Source: Macrostomum lignano (Eukaryota). From it: a stretch of DNA of 64,000 bases. Of this stretch, positions 5,501-60,720 are shown piece after piece (the stretch's first letter is position 1; each line of letters begins with the position of its first letter). Made by a program: the position numbers and the translations under genes. The stretch is from positions 1 through 64,000 of the forward strand of contig NIVC01003586.1 in assembly GCA_002269645.1 (NCBI GenBank), written 5' to 3'. The notes beneath the pieces were generated by a model. The model saw only the letters and a program-made list of their open reading frames with translations. It was not told where the DNA came from and did no database searches.

Positions 5501-8224
5501 TTTTATAAGTTAATCTATTATTTCTATATTCTATATAATTTGTATATTACTTTTTATTAGTTTTATATATATATTTATTGAGAATATTCTCATAATTTCT
5601 AGAAAATTTGATCCAAAAACTTTATGGAACATTCTAGAAGCCTACTGGGTAGATATATATTGAGGGTGAGTATGTGCAATCTTAAGAGATTACTTTTCAT
5701 GATTGTTGCTTTTGAAGCCAGATCAACTAAATGGATCTCTATTAACCCTTTATTAATGGCCTATTATTCTATAACTTCAAATCTGGCATTAAAGCAACTG
5801 AATTGAGCCACTATATTAACAGTGCATTTGGTGCCAGTATAGTGTCTAAACATACTACAAAGATTAGTTTGCTCAGTTTTGCCAAAGATATTTTAGCCTC
5901 AAAGATTTGCCCTGGTTAGGATATCCTTCTGACATGAATGATGACTATCTGTGCACACTTATTGAGGCTAACATCTGAGAAACTACTTGTAAGTTGGTGC
6001 AAGTCCTTAGGGTAGACATCAAACAATTGCCATTCACTTGCATCAACTGGGCAAGGTGCACAAGTTGACTCAATGGGTATCCCATGAATTGTCCAATTGG
6101 GACCACAAATGTAAGGCAGAGATGGCCACATCTTTTTTTTCTATTGGCATATGTATAAGTGGCTAAAGTTGATTGTTTTGGCAATAAAAATTATATTTAC
6201 ATATAAATATCAAGCATTGCCAGTCAAGTGAATTCTTATGCAACCCCTAAGCCATAGTCTAAGGCCAGACTCCACCTTTATAAGGTCATGCTATGCATTT
6301 GGTAAGACTATAAAGGTGTGATCCTCTATGAGCCATAGTCAGGAAGGTGGCAAGTGCACGCGGGAATCAATTTATGGAAAAATCCTTGGTGCACGCCAAT
6401 GTATGCCAATTTTTTAAAACCCTTAACATGACGTTTCTGTTGCATGCCAAAAATCTTGAATACCAAAAATCATGTACGCTGAAAATTGTGTATACCAAAA
6501 TCCTATATGCCAAAAGTGGTTACACCCTCTGTTTACCCTACAGTAAATTGTAAAAATTTGAATATTAACCGTATTAGATACTATTTTTAAATAAATTTTC
6601 TACTTACATTAAACAAAGTTTATATAAAAAAAGGAAATTCACTACAAAGAACATAGTGAGTATCAAAAACTTTTTCTTCACATTTCAAGAAACAAATAAA
6701 CTAAGTCTACAAGAGTCACAAAATAAGAGCATTTAAAAGTTATTGGATATTTTAATTTTAATGTAGGCTGTAGAGTGTAGGCCTGGCTGTAGGCTAGGCT
6801 GTAGCCTCAACTAGTTTGTTTAATCAATATTCAAATTGAATTGTTCACGTTTAACTTTATATATTGTATATATATTGTGTATACATCTATATCTGACTTG
6901 TTGATATATTGTCAGTTTGTAATTGCACGCCAAGGTTACACGCCAAGTAAAAAACTTGTACACTGAAAATTTAGGCGTGGCTTGAGACCCCTATTTGCAC
7001 GCCAACTTTGCACACCAAAATTTTAGCGTGGCTTGTGCACGCAGGAAAATTCCCGCGTGCAGGCCACTATCCTGAGTATGGTCTATGAGCTGCTGTCATC
7101 CAACATATCAATTATAGCTAACTAGTACAAAGGTCCAAAGGCTAGACAGATTAGCTACTACCATTGCATAGAAGCAACTGAATCATGGTTTGGTCCAATT
7201 CTTGCAAAATAATGTCTGCCCCACATTGCTAAGATTTGGCTAGGAACTAATGTCTTATTCCCTATATTCTTCTACCCTGGTGCCTAGTAACTACTATCTA
7301 TTCTTGGCCCTAACCAATATCTTAACAAGCAAAAATTTATTGATGAAGAAGCCTTGAATAACTAGCTTAATAATTTTTTCCTCAAAACCTAAGAAATTCT
7401 AGACTGATAATATTATTTCTAAATTCTACCTGAAAAATAGCAAGCAGTGATCAATTTGGATGGCAATTACTTTGCTTCTTATTTACATTAAAAAAACTCA
7501 GTTTGGAGGAAGGTTCTAGAAACTATAAGAACATTCTTAACAACCAAATAGATTTCCTAAGATATATTTAAATAGACATTCAAAGAAATCATCAAGATAA
7601 TTTAAAAAAAATAGTATTTAGAAACTTTATATTGACTTGCACCATAGTAATCATTGTACTTTTACTTAACTTATATAAAATAATTAAATATATTGGCAAA
7701 TCTATATTATCAAATGCATAGCATAATGGACAAGTGACAACCTATTTGATTTATATCTTTAAGAATACATTAGAAGCATTATTTTGGGGCCAACATGTTT
7801 ATAAATCTGGTCTACTATATTATCAATTGTGCTAGAGTCTGCCAAAAACTTTGATAATAAGTGTCCTTTATTTTTTAGGTCTTCGCCTAAGGGGGACTGA
7901 CTGCCCTCGATCCTGGTTGCGCAACTATGTTCATGTTGGTTTTACTTGTGATTGTGAGTTGTGACTTGTCTAATACGAGATGAATAATATTTTGTTGGTT
8001 TTGTTTGCCTAAAGATATATGCTTTTTATACCATTTTGTTCACATTAGCATTTCACTTACATTTTAGAATGAATCACATATTTATTACGCTTACAGTTTA
8101 TAAACTAATATTTCTCCTAGAAAGTATTGTCAAAAAATGAGTAACATTACGAATAGCGTACCCGAAGAACATGATATCCTTCTGTCCCACCTCCAGGTAC
8201 AGGTGTGCTATTTTCAGCACCCAT
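2519..8224 (-). CDS. GORASP2: Golgi reassembly stacking protein GRASP55/65, 5 exons, about 402 aa
   Basis: Exons 8162-8224 ([22 protein letters not shown]-terminal MG myristoylation), 4738-4818 ([27 protein letters not shown]), 4354-4641 (..[26 protein letters not shown]..), 3271-3528 (..[20 protein letters not shown]..), 2519-3037 (Pro-rich tail). All GT-AG, phase 0, two PDZ-like GRASP domains. Confidence 0.95.
3572..3899 (-). mobile_element. tRNA-derived SINE family A, near full-length copy in GRASP intron
   Basis: Minus strand starts GGGCACGTAGCCCAGTGG (A box)..GGCTCGATTCC (B box-like); body shared with three other copies in the window. Confidence 0.8.
3927..4330. repeat. 30-bp minisatellite (tgacagtgtctctgtcagtacagaatgatc), about 13 units, intronic
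   Basis: Direct observation; each unit holds a TGACAG..CTGTCA inverted repeat. Confidence 0.95.
5030..5460. mobile_element. MITE family C copy (tagatgggccact terminus), degenerate right end
   Basis: Colinear similarity to 57670-58105 over about 400 bp. Confidence 0.7.
6333..7081. mobile_element. Non-autonomous DNA transposon (family B) with CCATAGTCAGGAAGG TIR and 8-bp TSD
   Basis: Left ccatagtcaggaaggtggc, right gccactatcctgagtatgg; TSD TCTATGAG at 6325-6332 and 7082-7089. Confidence 0.85.
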
Positions 8225-9291
8225 TAACGAAGCTTTAAATACGTTGTCGTAAGATTAAATTATATAAATAATGAAACTTCAACACATTTAAGATTCAGGA
8301 CTGTTCAAAGAATGTCGTGATCTTCACAGAAAAGCATTTCTAAAAAATCTTGTAACACGTAATATATTTATTTATGACACAATAAAGCACATAATTGTTT
8401 AATATAATAAAATATATTTTCTGTTTTTCAAATAATGTGGATACACAACGTAGTTTATTCACTAGGATTTACTTCTTAGCAAAAATTATTTGTTTTAATC
8501 GAAAAACATTTAAAATTTAGATTCCGGCCACTTTTAAAACTTATACATGAAAATTGACATGTGAAAATGTTTGCCTTACTCTTTCGAAAATGCTTTATTT
8601 GAAAAAATACGAAACTCAAAAGTAAAATTTTATGGGTTCAACGACTATTCCAACATTATATTAAATAAATCTTGACGAGAGGACCTAATTTGTGTTTCTA
8701 TTCCGGACCACCTGGGCCGGTGGCGTTTTGTCACTTTTTTACGCGCTGATTTGCAAGCAGTAATTTGTCTAAAAAGCCTCGGTCACTTTGGACACCAGCA
8801 GGTTGTTGGCACGTTGATAATCTGATTGTTGGGAGAAAAGGCTACATGCATGTAAGTACAGTCACATAATTAAAACTTGTTTAATCAGATGATCGCTTCC
8901 CCATCTGGAACTACACTCTTGGTAGCTGGAGAGGGACTTTAATTTTTGCTTGTTTGCTTATCTGTGCTGAATTAAAGCAGAAATTGTTCGATAATTATCG
9001 CAGCAGCGATCGGAGTGCTCTACAACAAACGATCTACATTACACAGTAGGGAGCGGCGCACTAGTATATGGGGCGATACTGCTAGCTATCTCGTCGATCA
9101 GTCGTTCAATCAGTGCATTGAATCATTCAGATCATGCATGCATCTGCATATCATTTGTGCCCCGTCAGGCAGCCGCGGGCAAACTATAATTTATTTTTAA
9201 TGTTCACCGTATATAGCTTTAGTTAGCCTCTGAAGATTAATTATTAATCATTACGTCAGCGCTACATGTATTTGAGAGGTTCGTTATTAAA

Positions 9292-9595: not shown

Positions 9596-10295
9596 ACGAT
9601 TTGCACAATTCGGTGAAGTGTACATGTGTACTGCATTCGGTCACTCACAATCTCGCCAACGCAAGAACCTACTGCACAAGTCCTCTCTGCATGATCAATG
9701 CGATCCAGTCCCAGCAGCAAAAGAAACCAGTTGGCAGGATAGCTTGGAGTCCCTTCTAGGATCCTCAAACTAGGGTTGAGGGGGCGGTTATGGATTAGTT
9801 TAATCTACGGATTAGCTGATTTATAATCTTTTGGAAATCGCTCTGCTTGGCTCTCGCTGCCTTCTTAGCCAACACGACCTACATGTGCAGTAGCTGCTCG
9901 CCACATCTCTGCTACCAGCTTGGAGCTGACCATCTGACATGAGATTATTTTCTGTATTCTGAGGCTAAAGAAGCTGTTTCCGATCAAAGGCCAAATTAAA
10001 GAAGGTCGAAAACGTATCACGTAAAATTTGATCTAGCACGGTGCTACTCGTAATTCATATGCAGTAAGCTACGTAAGCAGAGAAGGGAGTTTCAAGAGCG
10101 GTGTTTAACTTGATTTTAGTTTGTACAAATCGTTTCGACTATTGTATAATTTAAACGTCAAATTACTGTGATAAGGTAATTTGGAGCAGTGAGCATAAAT
10201 TCCACACAGGCATCGAAAGAAATGGAACTTCATGCTTGTACACTCTTGCTAACACACGCTGGATCCGCAGTCCAAGTCCAGAGCCGCAACAATAA

Positions 10296-11261
10296 TGTTG
10301 TATCCCCCTTCCTCGCTGGCACGGCCGGGTTGGGCGACGGGTAGCGGTGTCGGGGTTCGGGTACTGGACTGCCCAGGGCTTACGAGCTCGATCGGCGACC
10401 CCGAGGCGTACGGACACTTCGGGGGGAGGTCAAGGTTGAGAAGTCGAGAGAGAGGGGAGGGGCGGCTGTGGGCGGGCGGCCACTCGACAGCCTGGTGAGT
10501 CAAGGAAGAGAGAGAGGGCTGCGGGCGGTCGGCCACTCGACAGCCTGGTGAGTCAAGGAAAAGAGAGAGGGCTGTGGGCGGGCGGCCACTCGACAGCCTG
10601 GTGAGTCAAGGAAGAGAGAGAGGGCTGCGGGCGGTCGGCCACTCGACAGCCTGGTGAGTCAGACTGAGGAGAGAATGAGAGAGAGAGAGATCAGGAGAGC
10701 GACCCCGAGGAACACAGGCAATTGTCTCGACAGCTTACCGGGCCGGGTCGATTATAGCACTCATACACGGGAAGGCCGATCGATTGCAATAAATTGAGTC
10801 TTCGCAGTAAGAGACCGTCTCTACGGTTGATCGCTGGTCACGTTCGTTTATTTATCGCGGTGGGCGCAAATGGGCGCAGGCACGGTGAGAAAAGGGGCGG
10901 GGTCTGAGCGTCGCCTTAAATAACGAGTAAAAAGGGGCAGGGGCGCAAACAAGGGGGGGAGAAAGGGCTTAAACAATGGAGCTGATTGACAGCTGATTGG
11001 CTGCGGCGAGGGGAGGGTGGAAGCGCGCACGGCCAGGGAGAGGGAGAGAGAGCAGAGGCCCAGCCAATCAGCACGGCTAGCCAAAGGGCTAAACAGCCAA
11101 GGCGAGAGAGAGAGAGAAAGAGAGCAGAGGCTCAGCCAAAGGGCTCATAGCTCCAGACTGGCTTGAGCCGGGGGGGGGGGGGTAACAATAATCAACTACC
11201 AAAGTCAACAACTATCAAAGTGCACTTGCACCAGGGGAGCACTGTGACACAGGTCACAACA
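10296..11261 (-). repeat. 3' LTR (966 bp)
   Basis: Matches 18125-19088; the only difference seen by eye is poly-G length (13 vs 11). Confidence 0.97.
10785..10828 (-). other. Spliced-leader (SL) exon-like sequence in 3' LTR
   Basis: AACCGTAGAGACGGTCTCTTACTGCGAAGACTCAATTTATTGCA; matches the M. lignano SL as recalled (CCGTAAAGACGG..TTTATTGCATG) and the flatworm AACCGT..ACGG..TTGCATG pattern. Confidence 0.8.
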
Positions 11262-11272
11262 CCCTCCCCCCT
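11262..11272 (-). promoter_or_regulatory. Polypurine tract
   Basis: Minus strand AGGGGGGAGGG directly abuts the 3' LTR. Confidence 0.9.
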
Positions 11273-11389
11273 AAAAAAAAGAAAACGACGCGCTTTGACT
11301 GAATGAAAATGAAAAAAAAATGTAATGAAATGAAACTGAATGAAAGAGACCAAGAGTGTCAGGCAGCGGCCGAGAGCGCAGGACAGGGG

Positions 11390-11770
11390 CCGAGGATGTC
11401 GGACAGGCCGAGAACACCGGGCACGGCCGAGAATGCCGGACTGTGGCCGAAAACGCCGGGCATGGCCGAGAATGCCGGACAGCGACCGAGAATGCCGGGC
11501 AGCGGCCGAGAACGCCTGGCATGGCCGAGAATGCCGGACAGCGGCCGAGAATGCCGGGCAGCGACCGAGAACGCCGGGCATGGCCGAGAACGCCGGGCAT
11601 GGCCGAGAGTGCCGGACAGCGGCCGAGAATGCCGGGCAGCGGCCGAGAATGCCGGGCAGCGACCGAGAACGCCGGGCATGGCCGAGAGTGCCGGACAGCG
11701 GCCGAGAATGCCGGGCAGCGGCCGAGAATGCCGGGCAACGACCGAGAGCGCCGGGCATGGCCGAGAGTGT
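11390..11770. repeat. GC-rich about 20-bp tandem array (ggccgagaatgccgggcagc variants) in the element 3' UTR
   Basis: Direct observation; source of several spurious ORFs. Confidence 0.9.
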
Positions 11771-11899
11771 TCCCCGCCCTTCCTTCGGGGCCGCTCCCAG
11801 TGCCAAACAGAGGGATCACAACGACGATCAGAGGAGAGATGGGATGAAATGAAGGAGTGAAGGTCTCTTGCCCGCCCTGGCATCCTGCCCCAGAACCCC

Positions 11900-12781
11900 C
11901 TAGACCGCCACCTCCGCCGCCCGGCGCAACAACCCCAACACGCGTCCTCCGTCGATTAGTTCAAACTGAGGGATCGCAACACTCATGACGAACCGAGTGC
12001 TTCGCTTGAAGGCAGGCCGCCGCCAGACACGCCGAGCATGACCCCGACACTTGGCGCTGATGTCACGGAGAATGAACTTGACAGTCTGAGCCAAAAGCTC
12101 GGCGATTTCGCGTCGATGATCCAGCCGCTCGCTGCCGCACAGTCCCACCATTTCAGTCAAAAGCCGGAACATCGCAGCTGGACTCCCCGACAACAAAGCG
12201 TGCCGAAGCTCCGACCGGATTCGAGCTCTTCGCTGCGTTGCCTCCCCGCTCCAGGTGTATTCCACCTCGGTACTCGGCTCGCTCCTCATCAGCCACGCTG
12301 GCGACTCCCGTTGGTCGATGACGAGCTCCGGTTCGTCTTCTGACATCGAAGTTTCGCCGTCGGATTCATTCAAGAGCTCTTCTTCCTCTGACTGCGTGAT
12401 TTCACAGCAGCTCTGAGCAGTCTCCTCGCCGCCGCAACCACCACGCTCGCTTCCTTCCGACTCCCTGTCCTCGTCTGACTCTTCTGTTTCGTCTTCAATC
12501 GTTACGACAAACTCCTCCGGGACGCACATCCCATCCGGCGGGACAAAATACCGGGCGCACTCGAGCGGGTTGCTAACGGCATCCTGCCCGAACCGGTCGT
12601 ACAGCGCTCGTCGAAACGGACACAGCAGGACCGCACTCGCATGCTGCAGCCTCTGGAAATTCTCCGTTCCACCGGGTCCACACTTGTCGGGGTGCCGTCG
12701 CAGGCTCTCACGGCGGTACGCACGTCGCAGCTCCTCCTCCGTCGCGAAGGGGCTGACACCAAACTCGGCGTAGAGGTCCAT
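11900..12781 (-). CDS. Retrotransposon ORF3: N-terminal DnaJ J-domain, acidic tract, unknown C-terminal domain (293 aa from the ATG)
   Basis: MDLYAEFGVSPFATEEELRRAYRRESLRRHPDKCGPGGTENFQRLQHASAVLLCPFRRALYDRFG has the J-domain helix pattern and HPD motif; same strand as pol, between integrase and PPT. Confidence 0.88.
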   Translation of the reverse strand: MDLYAEFGVSPFATEEELRRAYRRESLRRHPDKCGPGGTENFQRLQHASAVLLCPFRRALYDRFGQDAVSNPLECARYFVPPDGMCVPEEFVVTIEDETEESDEDRESEGSERGGCGGEETAQSCCEITQSEEEELLNESDGETSMSEDEPELVIDQRESPAWLMRSEPSTEVEYTWSGEATQRRARIRSELRHALLSGSPAAMFRLLTEMVGLCGSERLDHRREIAELLAQTVKFILRDISAKCRGHARRVWRRPAFKRSTRFVMSVAIPQFELIDGGRVLGLLRRAAEVAV

Positions 12782-12984
12782 GCCCGGAAAGCAGTGCCTG
12801 CAACAACCACGACTCACTTTTGAGAGCAGGGCAATGGTTCCTTCGAGCCTCTTTGGGGCGCCGATCCTTCATCCCTGATGGCAGGGTTGGGCAGGTGGGA
12901 CCTCCACTGACGGGCCTTAAGAGGGGAAATATATATTTTTGTTTGTGAAGCAGAGGCAATAACACGAGCCCAGTTTTCAATAAC

Positions 12985-13180
12985 GCGGGTGATGACGCAG
13001 ACGATGCTTCGAACCAAATGTTGATGACGCAGGTGATGACGCGGATGATGCTTCGAACCAAATGTTGATGACGCAGGTGATGACGCGGATGATGCTTCGA
13101 ACCAAATGTTGATGACGCAGGTGATGACGCGGATGATGCTTCGAACCAATTATTTATGACGCAGGAGATGACGCGACATT
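12985..13180. repeat. 44-bp tandem repeat (gatgacgcaggtgatgacgcggatgatgcttcgaaccaaatgtt), about 4 units, between pol and ORF3
   Basis: Direct observation. Confidence 0.9.
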
Positions 13181-13202
13181 GCGCACGCACTCACGTCCGC
13201 TC

Positions 13203-16200
13203 TTAATAATAAACGGGCGTTCCATAACGCTGCGGAACCCTTCGATCCCTCTGGGGTCGACCTTCGATGACTTCAACTGGCGCTTCCGGCTGCGGCTGCA
13301 CTCCTGGCTGCTGCACATCCATTGGTTCTCCCTCCTCTCGAACCCGCCCGGAATGTCGCCACCATCGCTCCTCATCCTCATCGTCCGATTCCGTCTCTTG
13401 AGCAGGACCTGGGTGGTACCTCCTTGGTGCAGGACGCCGAGGGCCACCGGTGCCGTCGACCGGGTACTTCCGGTACCGAGGCAGGAGGTTGTTAAAGTGC
13501 ACCACCTTGATCGGCTTCCGTCGACCTTCCTGTCGAATCCTATAGCGCGTCTCCGACAGCTTCTCGAGAACTACGGCAGGTCCGGTCCAGGGTGAGTGGA
13601 GCTTCGCTTTGGCACCGGCCTTCAACACGGGGTTGTAGACGAACACCTCGTCGCCAGCCACGAATTCTCGACCCTTCACCTTCCGGTCGTACCAGTCTTT
13701 CTGCACTCGTTGATATGACGTTATTCTCTCACGCACCACCCGATGGGCTTCCACGAGCGTCTCCCGCAGGTTCTGGACTTCCTCGCAGTACGGTTCGATG
13801 TCCAGTGGGCGCGCCACTCCCAAGTCAACTGGCAGAGACATCTCGCGACCATGCAGAAGGAAGAAGGGTGAGTAGCCGGTGCCGCGGTGCACACTGGAGC
13901 GATACGCCATGAGCGCCGGGGCAACGAATTCGTCCCACCGCCTCTGATCCGGCTCCTTCACCAGGTGCGCCCGGATCACTGCAGTCAGCGTCTTATTGAA
14001 GCTTTCCACTTGGCCGTTTCCAGAGGGGTGATAGGCGGTCGTACGCGTCTTTCGGATATTCAGACTTTCGCACAGCTGGCCGATCAATTGCGACTCGAAA
14101 TTGGCTCCCTGATCCGAGTGGATTGTCCCTGGGGCTCCGTAGTGACAGACCCACTCCTCGAGCATTGCCCTTGCACAGGTGCTGGCCGTCTGATCTGGCA
14201 CCGGTACTGCCACTGGCCACTTACTGAACGCGTCCTGCATCGTCAGTATGTATTTGTTGCCTCGGACGCTGGTTGGCAGTGGTCCAATCAAATCCACCAT
14301 CACTCTTTCAAACACATGGCTGCTGGGAATCGGCTCCAATGGGGCCTTCCGCCGCATCCCGGGCTTGCTCCGGTTACAGTCGTCACACCTTCGCACAAAC
14401 TCCTCGACCTCTCGCTTCAAGCCGGGTCTCCAGAATCGGTTCCTGACTTTCTCCAGAGTCTTTGCTACGCCGAAGTGTCCACCTCCTGGTCCAGAGTGCA
14501 GCGTCTGCAGAGCGTCGGGGATCAATTTCTTCGGGAGAACAGCCCGCGGTGGGTGACGTCCCAGATCCTTGATGACGAGGGTGTTGTCCACAATTTCCAG
14601 CCGAGGCTTTTGTGCCCAGATGGCTCGGGTCGTTGGTGACGCACCCCGAGGTGGCTCTTCGTTTGCTCGGCCGGCGTGCATCGACTGGTAAACTGGAGCG
14701 ATGTCGTTGTCCACAGCTTGTGCTGCTGCCAGCTCATCTCGGCTGAGCAACCCGAGCAGCGTCGTTACCCTGACCCCGGGGAGGTCATCAGTCCGGCACG
14801 ACGGGCAGTTATCCATTTCGGGATGTCGTCGCGGCGGCTTGCGTGACAGCGCGTCCGCATTCTGATGACGCGCCCCTGGCCGATGCTCCACTGCGAAGTC
14901 GAATGGCGCCAACCTCTCCATCCACCGAGCCAACTGGCCTTCCGGCTGCCTCATACTTCGGAGCCACTGCAGACTTGCGTGGTCGGTGCGCACCCGGAAC
15001 CTCCGGCCAAGTAGATAGTACCGGAACCTCTCTGCGAATGTCACCAGCGCCAGGAGCTCGATTCGTGTCGTGCAATAGTTGAATTCGGCCCCTTGCAGAC
15101 GCCGACTCCCGTACGCAATAACCCGCTCTGACCCGTCTTCTTGTACCTGCGACAAGACTGCTCCGAGACCCTGTCGGGTACTTCCATCGGTATCCAAGAT
15201 GAACTCACCAGCCGTGGGGTCGAAGTTCGGGTAGGCCATCACGCGGCAACCGGTCAATTCTTCTTTCAGCTTTTTGAAGGCCTCATCGTGTTCCTCTCTC
15301 CAACTGAACGGCTTGTCTTTCTTTGTCAGATCAAAAAGTGGTGCAGCGACTATCGAGAATTCTGGTATGAAGTTTCGGTAGTAACCAGCCAGACCCAGGA
15401 ACGACTGAAGGTCTTTTGCATTTCTTGGAATGCTCCAGTCACGGACTTCCTTGATCTTCTCCGGGTCGACATCGATTCCGTCCTTTGACACGACGTGGCC
15501 AAGGAATTTGACCTCATCGGCCAGGAATCTGCACTTAGATGGCTTTAGCCTCAAGTTGGCTGCGCGCAGGCGCTGGAATACCGCCTCGAGATTCGTTAGA
15601 TGCTCGCTGACAGTTCGGGACCAAATGATGATATCGTCGATGTAGACGAGCGCCATTTTCCACAGAAGGTCGTGTAGTACCATATTCATCAACCTTGTGA
15701 ATGTCGCCGGCGCATTGGTCAATCCGAAGGGCAGCACCTTGAACGCGAATTGCCCCCGATGCGGAATGACAAAAGCAGTCTTTTCTTGATCCTCCCTTTT
15801 GACCTTAACTTGCCAATAGCCGGAGCAAAGGTCGAGCGTCGAAAATACAGCCGCACCTCCGAGCGCTTCAAGTGCGTCATCGACACGCGGGATTGCTATG
15901 GCGTCCTTGACAGTTCGTTGATTCAACTCTCTGTAGTCGACACACAGTCGCAGTTCCCCATTCTTTTACGGACACAGACCACTGGCGAACTCCACGGCGA
16001 TTGGGTCGGTTCAATCATCTTCGTTGCCAAAAGCTCGTCGATTTGTCGGTCGACTTCGCCGCGCCAATGTGGCGGTAGCCGTCGCGGAGGCTGTTTTACG
16101 GCTGTTCCGGTGGTCTCAATTTCATGCTGCACGATGTCCGTCGTCCCGAGGCGCGCTGTACTCTCTGCGAAAACATCTGCGTATCGATTCACCAATCTTA

Positions 16201-17155
16201 GGAAACTCGCTTTGTCTGCCCCCGTGAGCTGCTTGGAGCCGTGCTGGTTCAGTGCCGCCTCTGGGTCCCATGGATCGCAGCTGGGTCGTAAAACCGACGC
16301 TTGCTCTTCGATGCTGGCTACCAGAACCTCTTGAGCCGGATCTGATGGTCGAAACCAGCCGATGACAGCTCCCTTCCGCAGCCGCAGCTCGGAGTCCGTG
16401 ACATTCGCGAAGTGAACTGGTAGGGTGTTGCCCTGCTGGATGAGGCAGACGCTCCTGGCTAGCATTGGTCTCTCATCGCTCTTCAGTTTTTCGTCTGGTT
16501 CGGCGACGCCGAGCACTCCGGAATTCTGTGTCGCTGTTCTCCGAATCCTGGCTGAGACGGTCCGTTCGTGATTGGCCGGAATGATCAAGTTTTCGTTCAG
16601 GTACAACCGGCAGACGACTGGTTTGTGCTTGGTCTCTCGGATTGGCACACGTGAACCGTTCACGCGGAAAACTCCTCCGGCGAAATCGATTTGGCACCGG
16701 TGGCGGCGTAAGAAGTCGGTGCCTAGCAACAGTTCGTAGCCGACCCCTTGGACCACCGCAATTGGCGTCTGTAAAGTTTCTGATCCGAACTGTAGGGGAA
16801 GCGACGCGCATCCTAACACATTCATGGGAGTTCCGTTCGCTGAGATCAGGTGGGTTTCCGAAGGGCTGAGTTCAACTCGAACCGACTTGCTCAACTGCCG
16901 CCAGGTCCTCTCGTTCACCAGCGACATGACCGAGCCCGAATCCAACAGACACGGCAACTCAATCTCGCCAATTTTTACCGACACGTAGATTGACACGGGA
17001 TTAAAAGCTGTTGCAGGTTGATCTCTATCTCTTGAGCAGTCCGCCGGACATCCTGCTGCACGTCGCTCCGGGGCTGCATCTTCGTCTCGGGTTGGGGCCT
17101 CTACTGTCTCGGCGGAACTCCCTCGCCCCTGCGGAAGTTCCCCTTGCCGTTTCCC
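13203..17155 (-). CDS. pol: protease, dUTPase-like spacer, RT, RNase H, integrase (GPY/F); one 1-bp frameshift at about 15965
   Basis: LLDSGS (PR), YIDD (RT), TDGS..YGSRRL (RH), H-H-C-C then D..D..E (IN), SPWTGP. ORFs 15923-16996 and 13203-15926 join if one A is added to the A4 run. Confidence 0.95.
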
Positions 17156-18081
17156 TGTTGCTGACGGGTTGGGCAGTTAGTCGCGATGTGCCCTGGCTTG
17201 TTGCAGAAGAAGCAGCGAATTCCTCCCGTTCGTCGAGGCTTCTGATGGTCGCCTTCGTCGGAGTCGGTCGGTCGAGCTGCGGCGCTGCTATGCGGTTCCG
17301 CTCTCAGCGACTCGAGCTGAACCACTTTGCCTTGAAGCTGCCTCACCAGTTTCTTCAACTCCTCGAGCTCTTTGTCCTTTTCTTGGGAGTAGGCTCCATC
17401 CTCCCGAGGCACAGATTCCGCCGCGCCGCTCACCACGAAGACTCCTCGGTGGCCGCTGCCAGTTGCTCCAGCCGATCTCGGTCCCTTCGCCGCCTTGGAC
17501 GCCGCCTCGAGCTGCCTCACCGCGCGTTGTGCTGCCACCAGACCTTCGGGCTGCTGCAGGTAGAGCTTCTCTCGCTGGAGGTCGGAGAGTCTCACCCCTT
17601 GCATGAAGCGATCCTTTGCGAGGTCGTCCTGCAGCTCGGCAGTTGCCGCCGGGTAGGCACAGCGCACCAGTTCAAGGAGAGCATCTGCGTAGGCCTCCAA
17701 CGACTCGCCATCCTTCTGATCTCGGGTTTTTAGCTCGACCTTGCTGTCCTGCTCTGTCCGGTACCGGGAGAAGCGAGCCTCCAACCGGGCGGTGAATCCC
17801 TCGTAGTCCAGCGGATCCACAGGATCGTCGGGTCCCGGCAGGTTCAGATTATCGACCGCAGCGTACGCCGTAGCGAGATCCAGCATGCTCATCAAGTGCT
17901 CGCGGCGATGCTCCTCGTCAATCTCGGCGGAGTCGCAATAAGCGTTGAAAGAGCGCAGCCAGAGTCGAAAATTCATGCTTGACGTGTACTTCACGGGCTT
18001 CGGGAGTCTCGGTGGCTGGGCTGGTCCATCCGCTCGCAGACGCTCGGCTAGCAGCCGAATCAGTTCGTCCACATTCGCCAT
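17101..18081 (-). CDS. gag with CCHC zinc knuckle (326 aa)
   Basis: CFFCNKPGHIATNC; typical gypsy capsid region; ATG 25 nt after the PBS. Confidence 0.95.
   Translation of the reverse strand: MANVDELIRLLAERLRADGPAQPPRLPKPVKYTSSMNFRLWLRSFNAYCDSAEIDEEHRREHLMSMLDLATAYAAVDNLNLPGPDDPVDPLDYEGFTARLEARFSRYRTEQDSKVELKTRDQKDGESLEAYADALLELVRCAYPAATAELQDDLAKDRFMQGVRLSDLQREKLYLQQPEGLVAAQRAVRQLEAASKAAKGPRSAGATGSGHRGVFVVSGAAESVPREDGAYSQEKDKELEELKKLVRQLQGKVVQLESLRAEPHSSAAARPTDSDEGDHQKPRRTGGIRCFFCNKPGHIATNCPTRQQQGNGKGNFRRGEGVPPRQ
17114..17155 (-). promoter_or_regulatory. Candidate -1 ribosomal frameshift signal (gag-pol)
   Basis: G GGA AAC slippery heptamer (17149-17155), 7-nt spacer, 9-bp stem with 10-nt loop; -1 frame is open into protease. 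Confidence 0.75.
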
Positions 18082-18105
18082 GACAGCTCACAAGCAAACT
18101 GAGCA

Positions 18106-18123
18106 GTCCCTGTTCGGGCGCCA
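18106..18123 (-). promoter_or_regulatory. Primer binding site, tRNA-Lys
   Basis: TGGCGCCCGAACAGGGAC, 1 nt inside the 5' LTR; this is the known tRNA-Lys(UUU) PBS sequence. Confidence 0.92.
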
Positions 18124-18124
18124 A

Positions 18125-19088
18125 TGTTGTATCCCCCTTCCTCGCTGGCACGGCCGGGTTGGGCGACGGGTAGCGGTGTCGGGGTTCGGGTACTGGACTG
18201 CCCAGGGCTTACGAGCTCGATCGGCGACCCCGAGGCGTACGGACACTTCGGGGGGAGGTCAAGGTTGAGAAGTCGAGAGAGAGGGGAGGGGCGGCTGTGG
18301 GCGGGCGGCCACTCGACAGCCTGGTGAGTCAAGGAAGAGAGAGAGGGCTGCGGGCGGTCGGCCACTCGACAGCCTGGTGAGTCAAGGAAAAGAGAGAGGG
18401 CTGTGGGCGGGCGGCCACTCGACAGCCTGGTGAGTCAAGGAAGAGAGAGAGGGCTGCGGGCGGTCGGCCACTCGACAGCCTGGTGAGTCAGACTGAGGAG
18501 AGAATGAGAGAGAGAGAGATCAGGAGAGCGACCCCGAGGAACACAGGCAATTGTCTCGACAGCTTACCGGGCCGGGTCGATTATAGCACTCATACACGGG
18601 AAGGCCGATCGATTGCAATAAATTGAGTCTTCGCAGTAAGAGACCGTCTCTACGGTTGATCGCTGGTCACGTTCGTTTATTTATCGCGGTGGGCGCAAAT
18701 GGGCGCAGGCACGGTGAGAAAAGGGGCGGGGTCTGAGCGTCGCCTTAAATAACGAGTAAAAAGGGGCAGGGGCGCAAACAAGGGGGGGAGAAAGGGCTTA
18801 AACAATGGAGCTGATTGACAGCTGATTGGCTGCGGCGAGGGGAGGGTGGAAGCGCGCACGGCCAGGGAGAGGGAGAGAGAGCAGAGGCCCAGCCAATCAG
18901 CACGGCTAGCCAAAGGGCTAAACAGCCAAGGCGAGAGAGAGAGAGAAAGAGAGCAGAGGCTCAGCCAAAGGGCTCATAGCTCCAGACTGGCTTGAGCCGG
19001 GGGGGGGGGTAACAATAATCAACTACCAAAGTCAACAACTATCAAAGTGCACTTGCACCAGGGGAGCACTGTGACACAGGTCACAACA
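18125..19088 (-). repeat. 5' LTR (964 bp) with CCAAT, GC boxes, TATTTAAG, AATAAA, SL-like exon, splice donor and 4x about 50-bp repeats
   Basis: Direct repeat of 10296-11261. Confidence 0.97.
18614..18657 (-). other. Spliced-leader (SL) exon-like sequence in 5' LTR
   Basis: Identical to 10785-10828. Confidence 0.8.
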
Positions 19089-21559
19089 ATAAAACTTGGC
19101 TCACGACTCCGGTAGGTCTTCAAAGTGACGCTGCTCACGTCTGATTTCTTCAGATTAGTCCCGTTTGATGTGGCGGAATCCGCTGCAGGCCGAATGACAT
19201 CCAGCATCCGTTCTTGACTGCCGAATTGATGGCGCCTGCTTGCATGAGCTTTCTGCGGCGACCCACGCACCGGCGGCATCGATGACTGCAGCAGCGAGTC
19301 GTTGCTTCGTCGATGAGGTGCGGCGGACGTCGGCAGAGGACGCGACTCCAGCTCGCAGAGCAGGCAGTCTTTATAGAGCGCCGACTTAAGAAAACGAGCA
19401 TAGCTGTCCATGCGCATCAGGTTGAAGATCTGGCTCTGCGCTGCGTTGAACATGCCGACATCGAGCTGGCCGCTGCTCAGGCGACGCTGCACCTCGCGCT
19501 CGGTGGCGCCGTCCAGATTGATACTCGCTGGAGCCTCGCAGCCAATGTGGAGTCGCTCGATACGATGGGCCGCGGCGAGAATCTGCTGAGAGAGGGTGCA
19601 GACGTTATTGACTTTACTAGATAAATGAGCTCCCAGGTGGGAAAATTGATGAAAAAATTGTGGTGACCATTCGGAAAAGCTGCGTCATTGCATAACGCGA
19701 GTCTGGGGAAGGATATCCTCTTGTACTCAGACAGTCAAGCAGCGATCCTCGCCCTTGAGCGCACCACCACCACCGACTACATCGGGTAGCTTAACTGCAT
19801 GCTTAGGTGCCTTCAACAAGGTGTCTCTAATATGGATTTCCGCGGGCACTCGGGCCATCCCAGCACCCCAGCTGCTGCCCAATCACAGCAGGGTGAGCTG
19901 GAGTGCAGAGCTGCTGCCCAATCACAGCAGGGTGAGCTGGAGCTCAAGAGCTGCTGCCCAATCACAGCAGAGTGAGCTAGAGCCCAGAGCTGCTGGCCAA
20001 TCACAGCAGGGTTAGCTGGAGCCCAGAGCTGCTGCCCAATCACAGCAGGGTGAGATGGAGCCCAGAGCTGCTGCCCAATCACAGCAGGGTGAGCTGGAGC
20101 TCCGAGCTCAAACGTGCCACTGGCTCACAGTTGGCTGGCTTGGGAGATGACGCTCATACAGCCTACTCAGCTGAGCACTAACTGCGATCAACTCTGCTTA
20201 ACCGCGAAAGCTTCAAAGTAACAAGCTCTCAGCTGAGCTGCCAGCCTCACCTCGCCAGGTTCATCCGTCGGCAGTTGCTTGAACTCTTCGACAGCCAGCC
20301 AGAACTGGATGTTCTCTTCGCTGAATTCGGTTCGGAGAAAGTCGGCGAACACCCAGACACCGTCGGTGTCAGCCAGCAGGTGGTCCAGCCCGGTGGCCCA
20401 CTTGGCTACCCGATTCGCTCCGCGTCGCAGCTCCTCCAAGCCTGCAATGAATAATTGTGATGGAACTATACTGGCACTCCTGACACTATGCTGGCACTCC
20501 TGACACTATGCTGGCACTCCTGACACTATGCTGGCACTCCTGACACTATGCTGGCACTCCTGACACTATGCTGGCACTCCTGACACTATGCTGGCACTCC
20601 TGACACTATGCTGGCACTCCTGACACTATGCTGGCACTCCTGACACTATGCTGGCACTCCTGACACTATACTGGCACTCCTGACACTATGCTGGCACTCC
20701 TGACACTATGCTGGCACTCCTGACACTATGCTGGCACTCCTGACACTATGCTGGCACTCCTGACACTATGCTGGCACTCCTGACACTATGCTGGCACTCC
20801 TGACACTATGCTGGCACTCCTGACACTATACTGGCACTCTTGACACTATGCTGACACTCTTGACACTATGCTGACACTCTTGACACTATACTGTCTGGCA
20901 CTCCTGACACTATACTGGCACTCCTGACACTATACTCACGCTCCTGAATCTATACTCTCCTTTCTCTTCAAACAGACTGCATGAAACGCACATGTAATAG
21001 CTCATACATTTGTTTCATAACATTCCGGAAGAAAAATCTGACATCCCAGTCAGACTTTGGAGGTAGAGTGCATATAATTGCGCCCATCTGTTCATAGGGA
21101 TCTAGGGACAATGGTACGCAAGCAGAGCTACCATATTTTCGTACCCGCTGCTGCAGCGGCGCAGTCCCGGCTCAGCTGGCCGCCGACCATCCAGTCGTCG
21201 TCGAAGTCAAGCGTCTCCTTCATCTGGGCCAGATTCTGACAGCTGACAGCCAGTTTGGAACGGCCCTGACTGCCGTGCTGGTGCAGCTGATGTTGCGGGA
21301 ATCTGCAAGGTGGCGCGAACTCATCGATGTCGGGCTTGACTTGCTCGCCACCGGAACTGGTGCTAGCGAGGCTGTGCTGGGATCCGAAGAAGCTCAGGTG
21401 GCCGATGTTGCTCAGGAGGTGACTCAGCCTGTGCCAGCGGTGCTGATGTTAGTGCTGCGTTGATTGCTGCTTCTGCGACTGCTGCTGGGCGTTGGCAAAT
21501 TTCTGCTTCCCAGCGCCAGTCTGCTTTGCCGACTTTCCCTTGCCAGGCTTGTAGAGCAT
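19019..21559 (-). CDS. Regulator of G-protein signalling (RGS12/14/loco-like RGS box), disrupted by the LTR element
   Basis: Exons 21145-21559 (in-frame TAA at 21449-21451), 20251-20441 (W..GLDHLLAD..F.DFLRTEFSEENIQFWLAVEEFK), 19089-19582 (INLD..MFNAAQSQIFNLMRMDSYARFLKSALYKDCLLCELESRPLP); reads into the LTR to a stop at 19019. Confidence 0.88.
19700..19862 (+). pseudogene. Degenerate RNase H fragment of a non-LTR retrotransposon in RGS intron
   Basis: GKDILLYSDSQAAILAL..NKVSLIWISAG resembles [18 protein letters not shown] of the LINE at 36150-39968. Confidence 0.65.
19858..20100. repeat. About 40-bp minisatellite (agagctgctgcccaatcacagcagggtgagctggagccc), 6 units
   Basis: Direct observation. 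Confidence 0.9.
20462..20945. repeat. 20-bp minisatellite (ctggcactcctgacactatg), about 23 units
   Basis: Direct observation; starts about 20 nt from the RGS exon 2 acceptor. Confidence 0.95.
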
Positions 21560-22903: not shown

Positions 22904-24416
22904 CAGTAGGAATACCAAGCCATTTTTCCGCCCGTCGAACTACCAAGAGGGGGGGAAAAATTTCCCCCCTCCTGACAATTTTTTTTGCTGCGCCGGAACG
23001 GAGCAACGCAGGCACACGAAATTCAAGAACACCGGCAAACTTTTTGTTGCACACCTTCTCAAACAAGAATCAAGTCGCCAGCCCTCCGGACCGTCGAGAT
23101 ATTCGACGATTCTGCCAGAAGGTCGGATTTTTCCCATAAGCGCTAGTGTATTCAGTACACCCCTGTGCGCCAAATAGCACTGCGCCTCAGTGCAGCCTTG
23201 CCAAGTCTCCAAATTTCATCAGCACGTCGACCAAATGTGTCTGCATCAGCTCTGACTTCGTTGGTTACTGGCCTTCACCGAGACGGAGCTTCTAGACCTT
23301 CAACAGGTGGCACCAGGTGACTATGAACACCTTGATGCGAATTTCTCGAGTTTCACCGATCGAGCCTCGACAGTAGGCAAGCCTCAACTGCCGAACACCC
23401 TCAGCTAGTCTCCTGAGCATTCCGTCATCATCCCAACACCGTCGGCACCTTCAACAGGTGGCATCAGGTGACTATGGACGTCCTTTTGCAACTATGTCAG
23501 GTCTTTCTTATCAAGCTTTAATAATGGGCAAACCTCAACCGACGGACATTGTCAGCTAGTCTCTCAAGCATTCCGTCATCATCCCGACGCCGTCGGCTCC
23601 TTCAACAGATGACACCAAGTGACTATGGACACCCTGATGCGAATTTCTCTAGTTTCGCCGATCAAGCCTCGACAGTAGACAAGCCTCAACTGCTGGACAC
23701 CTTCAGCTAGTCTCCTAAGCATTCCGTCATCATCCCGACACCGTCGGCACCTTCAACAGGTGGCATCAGGTGACTATGGACGTCCTTTTGCAACTATGTC
23801 AGGTCTTTATTATCAAGCTAGAGAAATTAGAGAAACTAGAAACTAGAAACTAGAGAAATTCGCATCAGGGTGTCCATAGTCACTTGGTGTCATCTGTTGA
23901 AGGAGCCGACGGCGTCGGGATGATGACGGAATGCTCAGGAGACTAGCTGAGGGTGTCCGGCAGTTGAGGCTTGCCTACTGTCGAGGCTCGATCGGTGAAA
24001 CTCGAGAAATTCGCATCAAGGTGTTCATAGTCACCTGGTGCCACCTGTTGAAGGTCTAGAAGCTCCGTCTCGGTGAAGGCCAGTAACCAACGAAGTCAGA
24101 GCTGATGCAGACACATTTGGTCGACGTGCTGATGAAATTTGGAGACTTGGCAAGGCTGCACTGAGGCGCAGTGCTATTTGGCGCACAGGGGTGTACTGAA
24201 TACACTAGCGCTTATGGGAAAAATCCGACCTTCTGGCAGAATCGTCGAATATCTCGACGGTCCGGAGGGCTGGCGACTTGATTCTTGTTTGAGAAGGTGT
24301 GCAACAAAAAGTTAGCCGGTGTTCTTGAATTTCTTGTGCCTGCGTTGCTCCATTCCGGCGCAGCAAAAAAAATTGTCAGGGGGGGGGATTTCCCCCCCCC
24401 CTTGGTAGTTCTACTG
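22904..24416. mobile_element. Foldback-type element with about 500-bp inverted arms and internal 151-bp repeats
   Basis: 22937-23430 is the reverse complement of 23930-24410; ends ttaa|cagtag..ctactg|ttaa; units start at 23297, 23448, 23599, 23750. Confidence 0.85.
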
Positions 24417-28934: not shown

Positions 28935-30506
28935 ATGACGGACGCATTCACACTGTGGAGTCTGTTCAAGGATTCCACCACGCTGCAGGCCGTGCTGGGC
29001 TCGCTCATCGGCTTTCTAGTGATGCACCTGTTCCAGCAGCGCAGGACCGCCGTGCCGAACATGCCCATGGACGAGAGGCTCATGCCAGGGTACAGGGGCG
29101 GCCTGTCCGCTGCTACAATGCCCAGCGATCTACCATTTAGCATGGGCTCAAAGTCGCAGAAGACAAAGAATTCTAAGCAACCCGAGAAGCAGAAGCAGAA
29201 AAGTCAGCAAGCCGACCAGAAGGCTACGCAGAAGCGGACAGCCGAGCTGGAGCGCAAATTGTTTGAGATGCTGGTCGAAGAGGATGATAGCGAGGACTCC
29301 GACGAGCAGCGGGGGGAAGGCAGAATGCCAGCGCGGAAGCAGCAGCAGCAACAGCAGAAGCAGAAATCAAAGCCAGCAGCGACTTTAAAACAAGCGCCGC
29401 AAAGCGAGCTCAGGCGTCGGCGAGGCCGCCCCCCGGTTGTGGATGAATCAGTCGATCCGGAAGAAGATGACGACGAAGATGAAGAAGAAGCTGGGGAATC
29501 TGAAGACAAGACAGACAAAGACAGTTCGGAGCAGTCAGCTGGTGAGGAGGCGGAACTCAGCCTGGTGCCGTATTCCAATGTCGCCTATTCCGAAGCCGAG
29601 ATGTTGAAACGGGCGACCGACTTTGCCAACTTGCTGAGCCGCAGACGCTCGTGCCGCCAGTTCAGTGAGCGGCCGGTGGACCCCGAAGTGGTGCGGCTGC
29701 TGGTCACAGCGGCCGGCTCCTCGCCCAGCGGCGCCCACACCGAGCCCTGGACCTACGTGTGCGTCACTAACGAGCTGATGAAGCGGCGCATCCGGGAGAT
29801 TGTGGAAGAGGAAGAGGAGATTAACTACGCCAGAAGGATGAGCGCAGAGTGGAAGGCGGACTTGGCTAAACTGCGGACTAGCTGGGAGAAGCCGTATCTT
29901 ACTGAGGCTCCGGTTATTGTTGTGCTTATGCGACAGGTACGCAAGTTAGTGCTCGATGCACTTTTTTGTGTGATGGTTGCCTTGCTACTAACGAGTAGCA
30001 AGAAAAGGATGCGAATCAAATTTCTTACAGAGCAATAAAAAACACTAAAATGTGGGTTTAACCTCTTTTTGGACAAAATTAGAAGTCTGTATGTACATTG
30101 ATTCTTTTCAATCTGAACTCAGACGTGAGAGAGGTAGCTCAGCCACTGCAGAACTGAGAGATAGCAGCCCACTGAAAGATAAATATTGGATAGCCCATAA
30201 CCACCTTGAAATGCAATTGGACAGGTGCACGGCTGGCGCAGCGGTCGGGAGGAGAAGCGACAGCACTATTACTCGGAAATCTCGGTTAGCATCTCAGCCG
30301 GATTATTCCTGGCCGCTGTGCAGAATGTCGGCCTGTGCACTTTAACCAGCACGCCGATGAACGCCGGGCCAGCGCTTCGCCGACTGCTCGGCCGGCCGCC
30401 CAACGAGAAGGTGCACCTGCTTCTGCCGCTTGGCTACGCGGCCCACAATGCCCAGGTGCCTAATCTGACTCGCAAGCCGGTGGAAAAAATCATGGTTAAT
30501 ATATAA
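28935..30506 (+). CDS. IYD: Iodotyrosine deiodinase (nitroreductase fold), 2 exons, 427 aa
   Basis: Exons 28935-29936 and 30225-30506; N-terminal TM anchor; RRSCRQFS, SPSGAHTEPW, EEEEEINY, EKPYL, HYYSEISVSISAG, TLTSTPMN. Confidence 0.95.
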
Positions 30507-32335: not shown

Positions 32336-34557
32336 TCAATCCAGGACTAGACTGACCAGCAGGCCGTAGTGATCAGAAGTGTGCATCTGCAGGCCTGGCG
32401 GCCTGTCCCGCCCGCACAGCTCGAACCTATCAACTGTCATGCCGCGCACTAGCAGGCGATCGGGCCGGTAACTGGACCGCATCAAACGGCCAATACAGCG
32501 CCGGCCGCAACGCCGGCCAGCGTTCACATTTTTAGCTGCGTCCCACGTGTACTTTTCACCTTTGGGCCGGCCGCTGGCCTCCCACGCGTCCGAGACCGTA
32601 TCGGGCAGGCCGCCCGCCGATTTCAGCTCGTCGCTGCACATTATATTGAAATCGCCGCCTGTTTGTTTTATTGAATCGGATGGTTTTGTTATAGCGGAAT
32701 GGCGAACAGATTCTGATTTGAACATAATTAGAACATAAAGTTTATCAGCTAAGCTGGTCATTCATTTATTTTTGTCATTTTATTATTATTGGGATTCTTC
32801 GGACTAATTAAGACTTTTATCAATCGTCAAAGTTAAGTACTCTGTAAACATTGAGTCTGCAAGAAGTCTACAGACAGAATCCTATTTACCTGAGATCTCA
32901 GCAATTCCACTCAAGCCTCGACACCTCAGCAATTCCCCCAAGCCTTGACATCTCAGCAATTCCACTCAAGCCTTGACATCTCAGCAATTCCACTCAAGCC
33001 TTGACATCTCAGCAATTCCACTCAAGCCTTGACATCTCAGCAATTCCACTCAAGCCTTGACATTTAAGCAATTCCACTCAAGCCTCGACACCTCAGCAAT
33101 TCCCCCAAGCCTTGACACCTCAGCAATTCCCCCAAGCCTTGACATCTCAGCAATTCCCCCAACCCTTGACATTATAGCAATTCCCTCTGTAAGCCTTGAA
33201 ATTATTATAGCAATTCCCCCTGTAAGCCTTGACATTATAGCAACTCCCCCTGTAAGCCTTGACATTATAGCTATTCCCCCTGTAAGCCTTGACATTATTA
33301 TAGCAATTCCCCCTGTAAGCCTTGACATTATTATAGCAATTCCCTCTGTAAGCCTTGACATTATTATAGCAATTCCCCCTGTAAGCCTTGACATTATAGC
33401 AACTCCCCCTGTAAGCCTTGACATTATAGCAATTTCCCCTGTAAGCCTTGACATTATAGCAATTTCCCCTGTAAGCCTTGACATTATAGCAATTTCCCCT
33501 GTAAGCCTTGACATTATAGCAATTTCCCCTGTAAGCCTTGACATTATAGCAATTCCCTCTGTAAGCCTTGACATTATAGCAATTCCCCCTGTAAGCCTTG
33601 ACATTATTATAGCAATTCCCCCTGTAAGCCTTGACATTATTATACCAATTCCCCCTGTAAGCCTTGACATTATTATACCAATTCCCCCTGTAAGCCTTGA
33701 CATTATTATACCAATTCCCCCTGTAAGCCTTGACATTAAAGCAATTCCCTCTGTGAGCCCTGACATTATTATAGCAATTCCCCCTGTAAGCCTTGACATT
33801 ATTATAGCAATTCCCCCTGTAAGCCTTGACATTATTATAGCAATTCCCCCTGTAAGCCTTGACATTATAGCAATTCCCCCTGTAAGCCTTGACATTATTA
33901 TAGCAATTCCCCCTGTAAGCCTTCACATAGAAATACGTAGGCTATGCTGCTCTTAAAAAGTTTCTTAGAAATCGGAGAGAACTTTTGAATTGTTTGCGCT
34001 CACCAAGCAGGGAGCGGGTCGCGGCAGACGAGGTCATGGCGCGCAGACAGGTGACCAGCTGGGCGCGCCGTTCGGCAGTCTGAGAAGCGCCAGATTCCAA
34101 ATGACAGTTGAACAGCCGGGCCTGCTTGTCGCCAAGCTGCACATTGCAGGCCAGCAGACAGCGGCCCATTTTAGAATTGTCTAACGGCAGGACCCGACAG
34201 TCCAGGCACTGCACAGAATCTTTGATCAGGGTGGCCACAAAATAATGGTCTGTGTGACCGCCCGGCAGCAGGCGATAGTTGCTTAGCCGCTGAAGCAGCT
34301 GGTCAAAGCTGGCGGGCACGACCTCCTGAAGCAGGGCCACGTGAACATCGTGCGCCAGGATGCAGTTGGCCACAGATTCTGTGCGCACTGCCAGCTGCTC
34401 CGAGTTGAGCCCCTCAGTGTTCCACAACAGCACGCGTAGTGTCATCGCACCTGCGCCGGCTAAATTGAGTGATGACAAAACGTCTAGCAGAAGTTACAGT
34501 GCTCTACTATTTACACTTCAGTATGTATCCAAATAAATGCTTACCTATATTATCCAT
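32336..34557 (-). CDS. TDP2: Tyrosyl-DNA phosphodiesterase 2 (EEP family)
   Basis: Exons 34004-34459 and 32336-32658, with a probable small upstream exon 34545-34594 (MDNI); motifs WNTEGL, LQEV, HLES, GDFN, TWD..NVN, SDH; splice phases consistent; 5' end uncertain. Confidence 0.9.
32895..33925. repeat. 1-kb intronic minisatellite grading from 28-bp (gacatctcagcaattccactcaagcctt) to 30/33-bp units (gacattatagcaattccccctgtaagcctt)
   Basis: Direct observation. Confidence 0.95.

Positions 34558-36149: not shown

Positions 36150-41029
<4,880 letters not shown>

Positions 41030-60181: not shown

Positions 60182-60720
<539 letters not shown>

Follow-up and report, generated by a model that had tools for sequence, protein, structure and literature searches.

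A near-complete host spliced leader at the predicted R/U5 border of both long terminal repeats in a Ty3/Mdg4-type retrotransposon of Macrostomum lignano

Retroelements and spliced leader (SL) sequences are found together in several described systems. SLACS, CZAR, CRE and NeSL-1 are retrotransposons without long terminal repeats (non-LTR retrotransposons) that insert into SL RNA genes. Here we report a Ty3/Mdg4-type (gypsy) LTR retrotransposon of the flatworm Macrostomum lignano that carries a near-complete copy of the SL of its host in both LTRs. The element lies on the minus strand of contig NIVC01003586.1 (GenBank assembly GCA_002269645.1), within the 64,000 nucleotides (nt) from position 1 to 64,000 that were analysed and that we call the window. 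As with SLACS, CZAR, CRE and NeSL-1, a retroelement is physically associated with SL sequence, but in those elements the SL is the target and flanks the insertion, whereas in M. lignano it lies inside both LTRs and the TTAT flanks of the element are without SL.

Three other systems bear on how an SL may enter a retroelement. Transcripts of Cer1, a Ty3-type element of Caenorhabditis elegans, are trans-spliced to SL1, which sets the precedent that the RNAs of such elements can be SL trans-spliced (PMC3315495). In Cer1, however, SL1 is present only on a spliced subgenomic mRNA and not on the full-length RNA, and no genomic copy of the SL in the LTR was reported (PMC3315495). Relict SLs are carried by retroposed genes of dinoflagellates (Slamovits and Keeling 2008, cited in PMC12582326), where likewise a trans-spliced RNA was reverse-transcribed and its SL exon became part of the genome; the dinoflagellate sequences are processed copies of host genes made by the machinery of another element, whereas the M. 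lignano SL sits in an element's own LTRs and is self-propagated. Finally, 597 candidate SL RNA loci of parasitic flatworms were discarded because they lie beside LTR elements or long interspersed nuclear elements (LINEs) and hold only a partial leader, and the authors suggest that transcripts of retrotransposons had been trans-spliced and then integrated (PMC12582326, Mol Biol Evol 2025). Like those loci, the M. lignano sequence is leader-only, has no other feature of an SL RNA and invites the same general explanation. Those loci are a count of filtered hits without anatomy, whereas here 43 of the 45 nt of the SL occupy the predicted R/U5 border of each LTR, and the family, which is young and has spread since it captured the SL, lives in a free-living macrostomid.

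A survey of 137 LTR families of M. lignano mentions neither an SL nor an open reading frame (ORF) with a J domain (PMC12801592), and our literature searches found nothing on an SL at the R/U5 border of an LTR. An earlier note on this DNA, made from the sequence alone, knew of no described LTR family that carries an SL, which is an overstatement given the 597 SL-like loci beside LTR and LINE elements. The association of SL fragments with retrotransposons is therefore known as a general phenomenon, and what is new is that a near-complete SL occupies the predicted R/U5 border in both LTRs and has been propagated by a young family whose host is a free-living flatworm.

The window contains the 44-mer in which the SL was recognized at exactly two places, both on its minus strand (10785-10828 and 18614-18657, 7829 bp apart), while the expected number of occurrences is 0 (100 dinucleotide-preserving shuffles). 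The SL of M. lignano has been published as a 44-mer (PMC5173321) and as a 35-mer (PMC8629364), and those of M. cliftonense and M. hystrix are a 45-mer starting GCCGT and a 43-mer, respectively (PMC10468722 supplement). By BLAST, positions 1-42 of the published M. lignano 44-mer match each window LTR with 41/42 identity and a second copy of the family, L001 (8067-8108), with 42/42. The terminal TG of the SL is absent from every LTR copy aligned, that is, from both window LTRs and from L001. The window copies thus differ from the published SL by one base of the hairpin loop and by the absent terminal TG, exactly as the earlier note had stated, and its identification of the 44-mer as the host SL in both LTRs holds. 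It had also let flatworm SLs begin with AACCGT, which is wrong for Macrostomum, where the M. cliftonense 45-mer and two genuine SL RNA genes described below begin with GCCGT. Accordingly, the first A of the 44-mer (18657) is part of an upstream CA and lies outside the SL, SL +1 is the second A (18656), which replaces a G that L001 keeps, and the SL copy proper is 43 nt long. That the match is due to chance or to misassembly has a negligible probability: the assembly is built from long reads and differences in homopolymer length are visible in it, but these stand against a 42/42 match, the null shuffle expectation and the recurrence of the SL in three LTRs on two contigs.

Genuine SL RNA genes for comparison came from scanning public metagenome contigs, and prokaryotic genome contigs as well, with a 29-nt core of the SL. 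A Macrostomum-type SL RNA gene was found at 615-722 of the JGI metagenome contig Ga0302322_100095745 (L009), and a second SL RNA gene with the Macrostomum SL exon at ~1589-1700 of JAGQZA010000190.1 (L011), a flatworm-like contaminant contig filed under a Flavobacteriaceae metagenome-assembled genome, where a U1 snRNA gene (1121-1283, Rfam E = 7.6e-40) lies ~300 bp upstream. With a slash for each exon limit, the sequence of both genes is ...CTTT/GCCGTAAAGACGG...TTGCATG/GTAAGACACC..., and after it come a stem-loop, a U-tract and a 3' hairpin; both have an exon of 45 nt, the GCCGT start, a GTAAG donor and a three-hairpin fold, which in L009 is the canonical one (z = -3.0). Four transcript-like metagenome contigs carry the SL at the 5' end followed by host coding sequence (porin, isocitrate dehydrogenase, phosphagen kinase). 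The SL scan of IMG/VR gave zero matches. We also observed an open reading frame downstream of the SL RNA gene in L009, at ~1775-2923.

Compared with these genes, the LTR segment is the host SL exon minus its last two bases and contains nothing else of an SL gene. The shared sequence is exon nt +1 to 43 exactly and none beyond. Immediately 5' of GCCGT the genes have CTTT, the LTR has GATCA at this place, and downstream the LTR reads TTGCA/ATCGATCGG where the genes have TTGCATG/GTAAG, so that the TG, the donor, the stem-loop, the U-tract and the 3' hairpin of L009 and L011 face unrelated sequence in the LTR. No GT donor follows the LTR copy directly, the nearest GTAAG being 46 nt downstream (LTR 522), and neither an Sm-like U-tract nor 3' hairpins, both present in L009 and L011, were found after it. 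We considered whether the SL together with this downstream GTAAG could form an SL RNA-like gene with a long exon and rejected the candidate, as no Sm-like site or hairpins follow the donor. Rfam returned no SL family for the window, for the LTR at a relaxed threshold or for the genuine SL genes; since it is blank even on the latter, Rfam is uninformative for the SL RNAs of flatworms.

The exon-only limits, the unrelated flanks and the lack of a donor or Sm site indicate that the segment derives from a spliced SL at the 5' end of an RNA, and its acquisition via RNA is well supported. The earlier note had likewise seen no GT or Sm site directly after the segment and had called it a trans-spliced product rather than an SL gene, and the comparison bears out both points, the copy running from SL +1 to 2 nt before the exon end between flanks unlike those of the genes. 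Real trans-spliced mRNAs retain ..GCATG at this junction. An SL RNA gene or pseudogene inserted into the LTR at the DNA level is very improbable: nothing speaks for it beyond the presence of exon sequence itself, a donor, an intron, an Sm-like site and the upstream flank of such a gene are all lacking, the similarity ends at the exon limits, and the SL is identical in both LTRs and present in a second insertion.

This second insertion was reached through the pol ORF of the window, which over the covered part is 100% identical to BOX15_Mlig001877g1 on contig NIVC01003073.1 of the same assembly. L001, as we call this locus, is a second copy of the same family at another place, ~99% identical and with a different 5' flank; no part of its 7.6-kb flank is present in the window. 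Its pol has at least two frameshifts, and its 3' LTR ends with the contig, short of the SL position, so that the SL is seen in three LTRs on two contigs. The SL region is identical between the two window LTRs. The presence of the SL in two insertions with different flanks shows that the SL-bearing form has transposed, and the motif is not private to one copy; according to the earlier note, a motif unique to this copy and absent from active relatives would have refuted its reading.

The LTRs of the two insertions differ by four substitutions in 964 nt, and two of the four fall on SL nt 1 and 7 (window 18656 and 18650; LTR 433 and 439; post hoc P ~0.01), where L001 keeps the host sequence. In addition, the 53-nt repeats of U5 number six units in L001 (~8200-8540) and four in the window. 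The SL is absent from the sister families, with which the earlier note had proposed a comparison. None was found in the M. lignano sister families L003-L005 (~50% Pol identity; L004 with intact 834-nt LTRs), in the metagenomic sister L002, which has the primer-binding site (PBS) and the type of ORF3 in common with the window element, or in the relatives L012-L016, among which L012 and L013 (Logan contigs of gag relatives) are too short for the R/U5 region; nor was one found in the non-LTR retrotransposon of the same window.

The position of the SL within the LTR is best described relative to the poly(A) signal. Cleavage at a poly(A) site takes place 10-30 nt after AAUAAA, preferably at CA. The LTR contains a sole AATAAA and no ATTAAA, and SL +1 follows directly on a CA, 19 nt past the AATAAA, the CA itself being 18-19 nt past it; only ~2% of LTR positions lie within 10-30 nt after this signal. 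The order of TATA-like box, AATAAA and SL given in the earlier note was correct, whereas its 19 nt count to SL +1 and not to the 44-mer, which begins after 18 nt. A CCAAT/TATA block with TATTTAAG as TATA-like box lies 70 nt upstream of the AATAAA, and in a segment-wise alignment to the LTR of L002 this core-promoter block was the sole part with detectable similarity (z = 2.9), so it is probably the ancestral promoter. From these motifs we would place the transcription start at about LTR 365-375 and cleavage at 431-432, which predicts an R of ~60 nt and puts the SL at the first base of U5. Further downstream follow the GTAAG at LTR 522, a polypyrimidine-CAG near 598 and the four 53-nt repeats. 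The U-rich stretch of the SL falls 11-22 nt past the predicted site of cleavage, at the distance expected of a downstream polyadenylation element, and the SL must presumably be at least compatible with such a role.

The same region could be read in another way, with transcription starting at the SL itself. The motif ATAAATAAA would then have a double role, as TATA box in the 5' LTR and as poly(A) signal in the 3' LTR, R would be very short, and the RNAs would begin with an SL-like leader that mimics a trans-spliced mRNA. The motif begins ~28 nt before SL +1, a typical distance from TATA box to start, and the SL copy lacks nothing at its 5' end, both of which agree with this reading. Nevertheless, we regard it as quite unlikely. 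The stronger CCAAT/TATTTAAG promoter is conserved in the sister element and lies 70 nt upstream, a start at SL +1 leaves no poly(A) signal downstream in the LTR, and the distance from the AATAAA to the following CA is 48 nt, so that R would be ~10 nt or less or the spacing atypical. Furthermore, SL RNAs carry a trimethylguanosine cap that a genomically encoded SL copy would not receive, and the AUG of the SL is lost.

We consider instead that the SL is a relic of a trans-spliced RNA of the element, which was reverse-transcribed and fixed by a non-homologous first-strand transfer, and we would give this origin a probability of roughly 0.6. First-strand transfer normally needs R at both ends of the RNA. 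In the proposed sequence of events, the genomic RNA of an ancestral Ty3/Mdg4 element would have been SL trans-spliced at an acceptor in its leader, the SL replacing R and the first part of U5, and the resulting RNA would read SL-U5'-PBS at its 5' end, without a 5' R. Minus-strand strong-stop cDNA primed at the PBS would have run up to SL +1 and, having no R to pair with, may have continued, without any homology, on the 3' end of the RNA, that end being the poly(A) site. Plus-strand synthesis would then give U3-R-SL-U5' in both LTRs, and with R and the poly(A) signal intact the lineage could have stayed mobile and come to occupy at least two loci. A landing elsewhere would delete promoter or R sequence, so that the lineage would be viable only if the cDNA landed where R ends. 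The observed order of the LTR fits this model: no base is missing from the 5' end of the SL, and the predicted poly(A) site lies directly upstream of it. A strand transfer of this kind plausibly accounts for the SL position. The earlier note had proposed a similar scenario for an SL at the R/U5 border; the SL does lie at the predicted border, and reverse transcription explains why.

Several observations weigh against this origin. The terminal TG, and with it the AUG of the SL, is missing at the junction TTGCA/ATCG in both copies, which simple trans-splicing does not predict, so that a later loss of 2 nt, a template switch or a switch at short homology is needed in addition. No poly(A) remnant, A-run or microhomology was found at the R/SL junction, and no similarity to the LTR of the sister L002 could be detected in the segment after the SL, which leaves the status of that segment as the element's own U5 unproven; the L002 LTR is so diverged that its U5 end cannot be aligned either, and the alignment is therefore uninformative on the origin of this segment. 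The transcription start, R and the poly(A) site were placed from motifs and spacing alone, and ATAAATAAA could serve as a TATA box ~28 nt before SL +1, as discussed above. Only two copies of the family were seen, the second with one complete LTR only, and the comparator SL genes come from Macrostomum-like DNA and are not M. lignano's own SL RNA gene.

The junction and the segment after it are where a template switch has to be weighed. Within U5, the reverse transcriptase could have left its template for an SL-bearing host mRNA packaged along with it, or for a free SL intermediate. Having copied this second template as far as its 5' end, it would have moved on to the 3' end of the element RNA, and the 46 nt from the SL to the following GTAAG could in that case be a host 5' untranslated region. 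A switch at short homology would explain the junction without the last 2 nt of the exon and without a later deletion, and the lack of detectable similarity between the segment after the SL and the sister LTR also agrees with it. However, the divergence of the sister LTR is too great for that dissimilarity to decide the matter, an arbitrary switch point would be unlikely to fall only 2 nt from the exon end, and two non-homologous events are called for where trans-splicing of the element's own RNA needs one. We therefore see a template switch as an unlikely, if credible, source of the SL, and trans-splicing of the element RNA as the preferred one.

Whichever way it arrived, the SL is today most likely a tolerated passenger with no adaptive role, predicted to lie ~60 nt inside a 5' leader of ~630 nt. 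The earlier note had suggested that the element may mimic SL-bearing host mRNA for translation, export or evasion of piRNAs, for which we found no evidence: an SL that is internal to the leader, not adjacent to the cap and deprived of its AUG lends no support to mimicry of such mRNAs. The copies of the family, with the four substitutions noted above, are too similar for conservation to inform on function. It is improbable, though conceivable, that the SL is exploited, for example as a self-mimic, with small-RNA silencing of the leader becoming costly to a host in which ~30% of genes carry the same 45 nt, as an alternative start at SL +1 that gives RNAs with SL-like 5' ends, or as a second R. 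In the last version the SL would be a pairing partner that lets trans-spliced RNAs of the element complete first-strand transfer. If the SL were exploited, the substitutions at SL nt 1 and 7 would reflect selection or repeated re-copying from SL variants.

The element itself (Table 1) is a complete Ty3/Mdg4-type LTR retrotransposon whose closest relatives are flatworm Ty3-type Pol proteins. Its two LTRs differ solely by 2 nt in the length of a homopolymer and both end in TG..CA, and their near-identity points to a very recent insertion. Pfam finds zf-CCHC, gag-asp_proteas, RVT_1, RT_RNaseH, Integrase_H2C2 and rve, with pol in the order protease, reverse transcriptase, RNase H, integrase; counted against the sister Pol, pol has one frameshift and zero in-frame stops in the aligned parts. 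The 18-nt PBS is shared with the sister elements L002 and L012 at the equivalent place, and it is putatively complementary to the 3' end of tRNA-Lys(UUU); tRNA scans of the window and four loci in search of a PBS partner found no tRNA genes. Exact-protein look-ups of gag and ORF3 returned no record, and homologue searches returned only three relatives of gag (44-45% identity), none of ORF3 and no further copies of the family.

Table 1. Features of the retrotransposon and of the rest of the window. LTR positions refer to the 5' LTR.
Feature	Position in window	Strand	Position in LTR	Size, details and basis
Complete Ty3/Mdg4 (gypsy) LTR retrotransposon, including both LTRs	10296..19088	-		Direct repeats at offset 7829, TG..CA ends, PBS, polypurine tract, gag/pol/ORF3
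Target-site duplication TTAT, 5' side of element	19089..19092	-		Read from sequence
5' LTR	18125..19088	-		964 nt; order U3-R-SL-U5, R as predicted
Inverted CCAAT box			192	Motif; 3' LTR copy 7829 lower
CCAAT box	18825-18829	-	260	Motif; 3' LTR copy 7829 lower
TATA-like box TATTTAAG, 5' LTR	18744..18751	-	338-345	Motif; 3' LTR copy 7829 lower
AATAAA, predicted poly(A) signal	18676..18681; 3' LTR copy 10847-10852	-	408-413	Only one in LTR
CA, predicted cleavage site and R/U5 border	18657..18658; 3' LTR copy 10828-10829	-	431-432	Standard spacing rule
Host SL exon copy, 5' LTR	18614..18656	-	433-475	nt 1-43 of 45
Host SL exon copy, 3' LTR	10785..10827	-		nt 1-43 of 45
53-nt tandem repeats in U5	18293..18490; 3' LTR copy 10464..10661	-		3.7 units (~4), TGACTCA (AP-1-like) in each
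Primer-binding site TGGCGCCCGAACAGGGAC	18106..18123	-		18 nt, one base past 5' LTR
gag	17101..18081	-		326 aa, open, CCHC zinc knuckle; Pfam zf-CCHC
pol (protease, reverse transcriptase, RNase H, integrase)	13203..16996	-		Pfam
ORF3, N-terminal J domain (DnaJ)	11900..12781	-		293 aa, open; Pfam 1.3e-12
20-nt tandem repeat array between ORF3 and polypurine tract	11362..11769	-		~20 units, 80% matches
Polypurine tract AGGGGGGAGGG	11262..11272	-		Adjoins 3' LTR
3' LTR	10296..11261	-		966 nt
Target-site duplication TTAT, 3' side of element	10292..10295	-		Read from sequence
Minisatellite arrays	2065-2226, 3927-4328, 19870-20933, 23296-23819, 32891-33929, 48317-48880, 55055-56822, 58925-59203, 60176-60730, 63451-64000			

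The J-domain ORF3 is a further feature of the element and is present also in the metagenomic sister L002 (5865-6659) and in the M. lignano sister family L004 (8953-9933), where it is fused to a chromodomain. Just 5' of the ORF3 ATG, both the window element and L002 have a pyrimidine-rich TGCAG acceptor, which suggests that ORF3 may be expressed from a spliced subgenomic mRNA. Our literature search found no paper describing J-domain ORFs in LTR retrotransposons. A scan of the LTR for heat-shock elements, prompted by this ORF and by the survey of M. lignano LTR families (PMC12801592), found none.

Elsewhere the window holds an apparently open non-LTR retrotransposon on the minus strand (36150-40891), with an ORF1 of 307 aa followed by an ORF2 of 1272 aa with AP-endonuclease, reverse transcriptase and RNase H domains, and a 367-aa ORF on the plus strand (28935-30038) with a nitroreductase-family domain (Pfam 5e-12) that is presumably a host gene or exon block. 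It is also unusually rich in minisatellite arrays, with periods of 4-151 nt; one of them consists of 139 units of (ATAG)n, and another, with an 11-nt period, is cut off by the end of the window.

The element gives a precise anatomical example of a class of SL-in-retrotransposon sequences so far reported only as discarded hits. For genome annotation in Macrostomum, it means that SL-based approaches such as read trimming and searches for SL genes can be confounded by LTR copies. The published search for M. lignano SL genes required 100% identity to the 35-mer including its final TG (PMC8629364), and as the LTR copies lack this TG, such a search would have missed them. In terms of the element's replication, the SL position would record a rare accident, in which an RNA without a 5' R completed reverse transcription and left progeny that were still mobile. 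SL trans-splicing may thus not always be a dead end for an LTR element in an animal that uses SLs.

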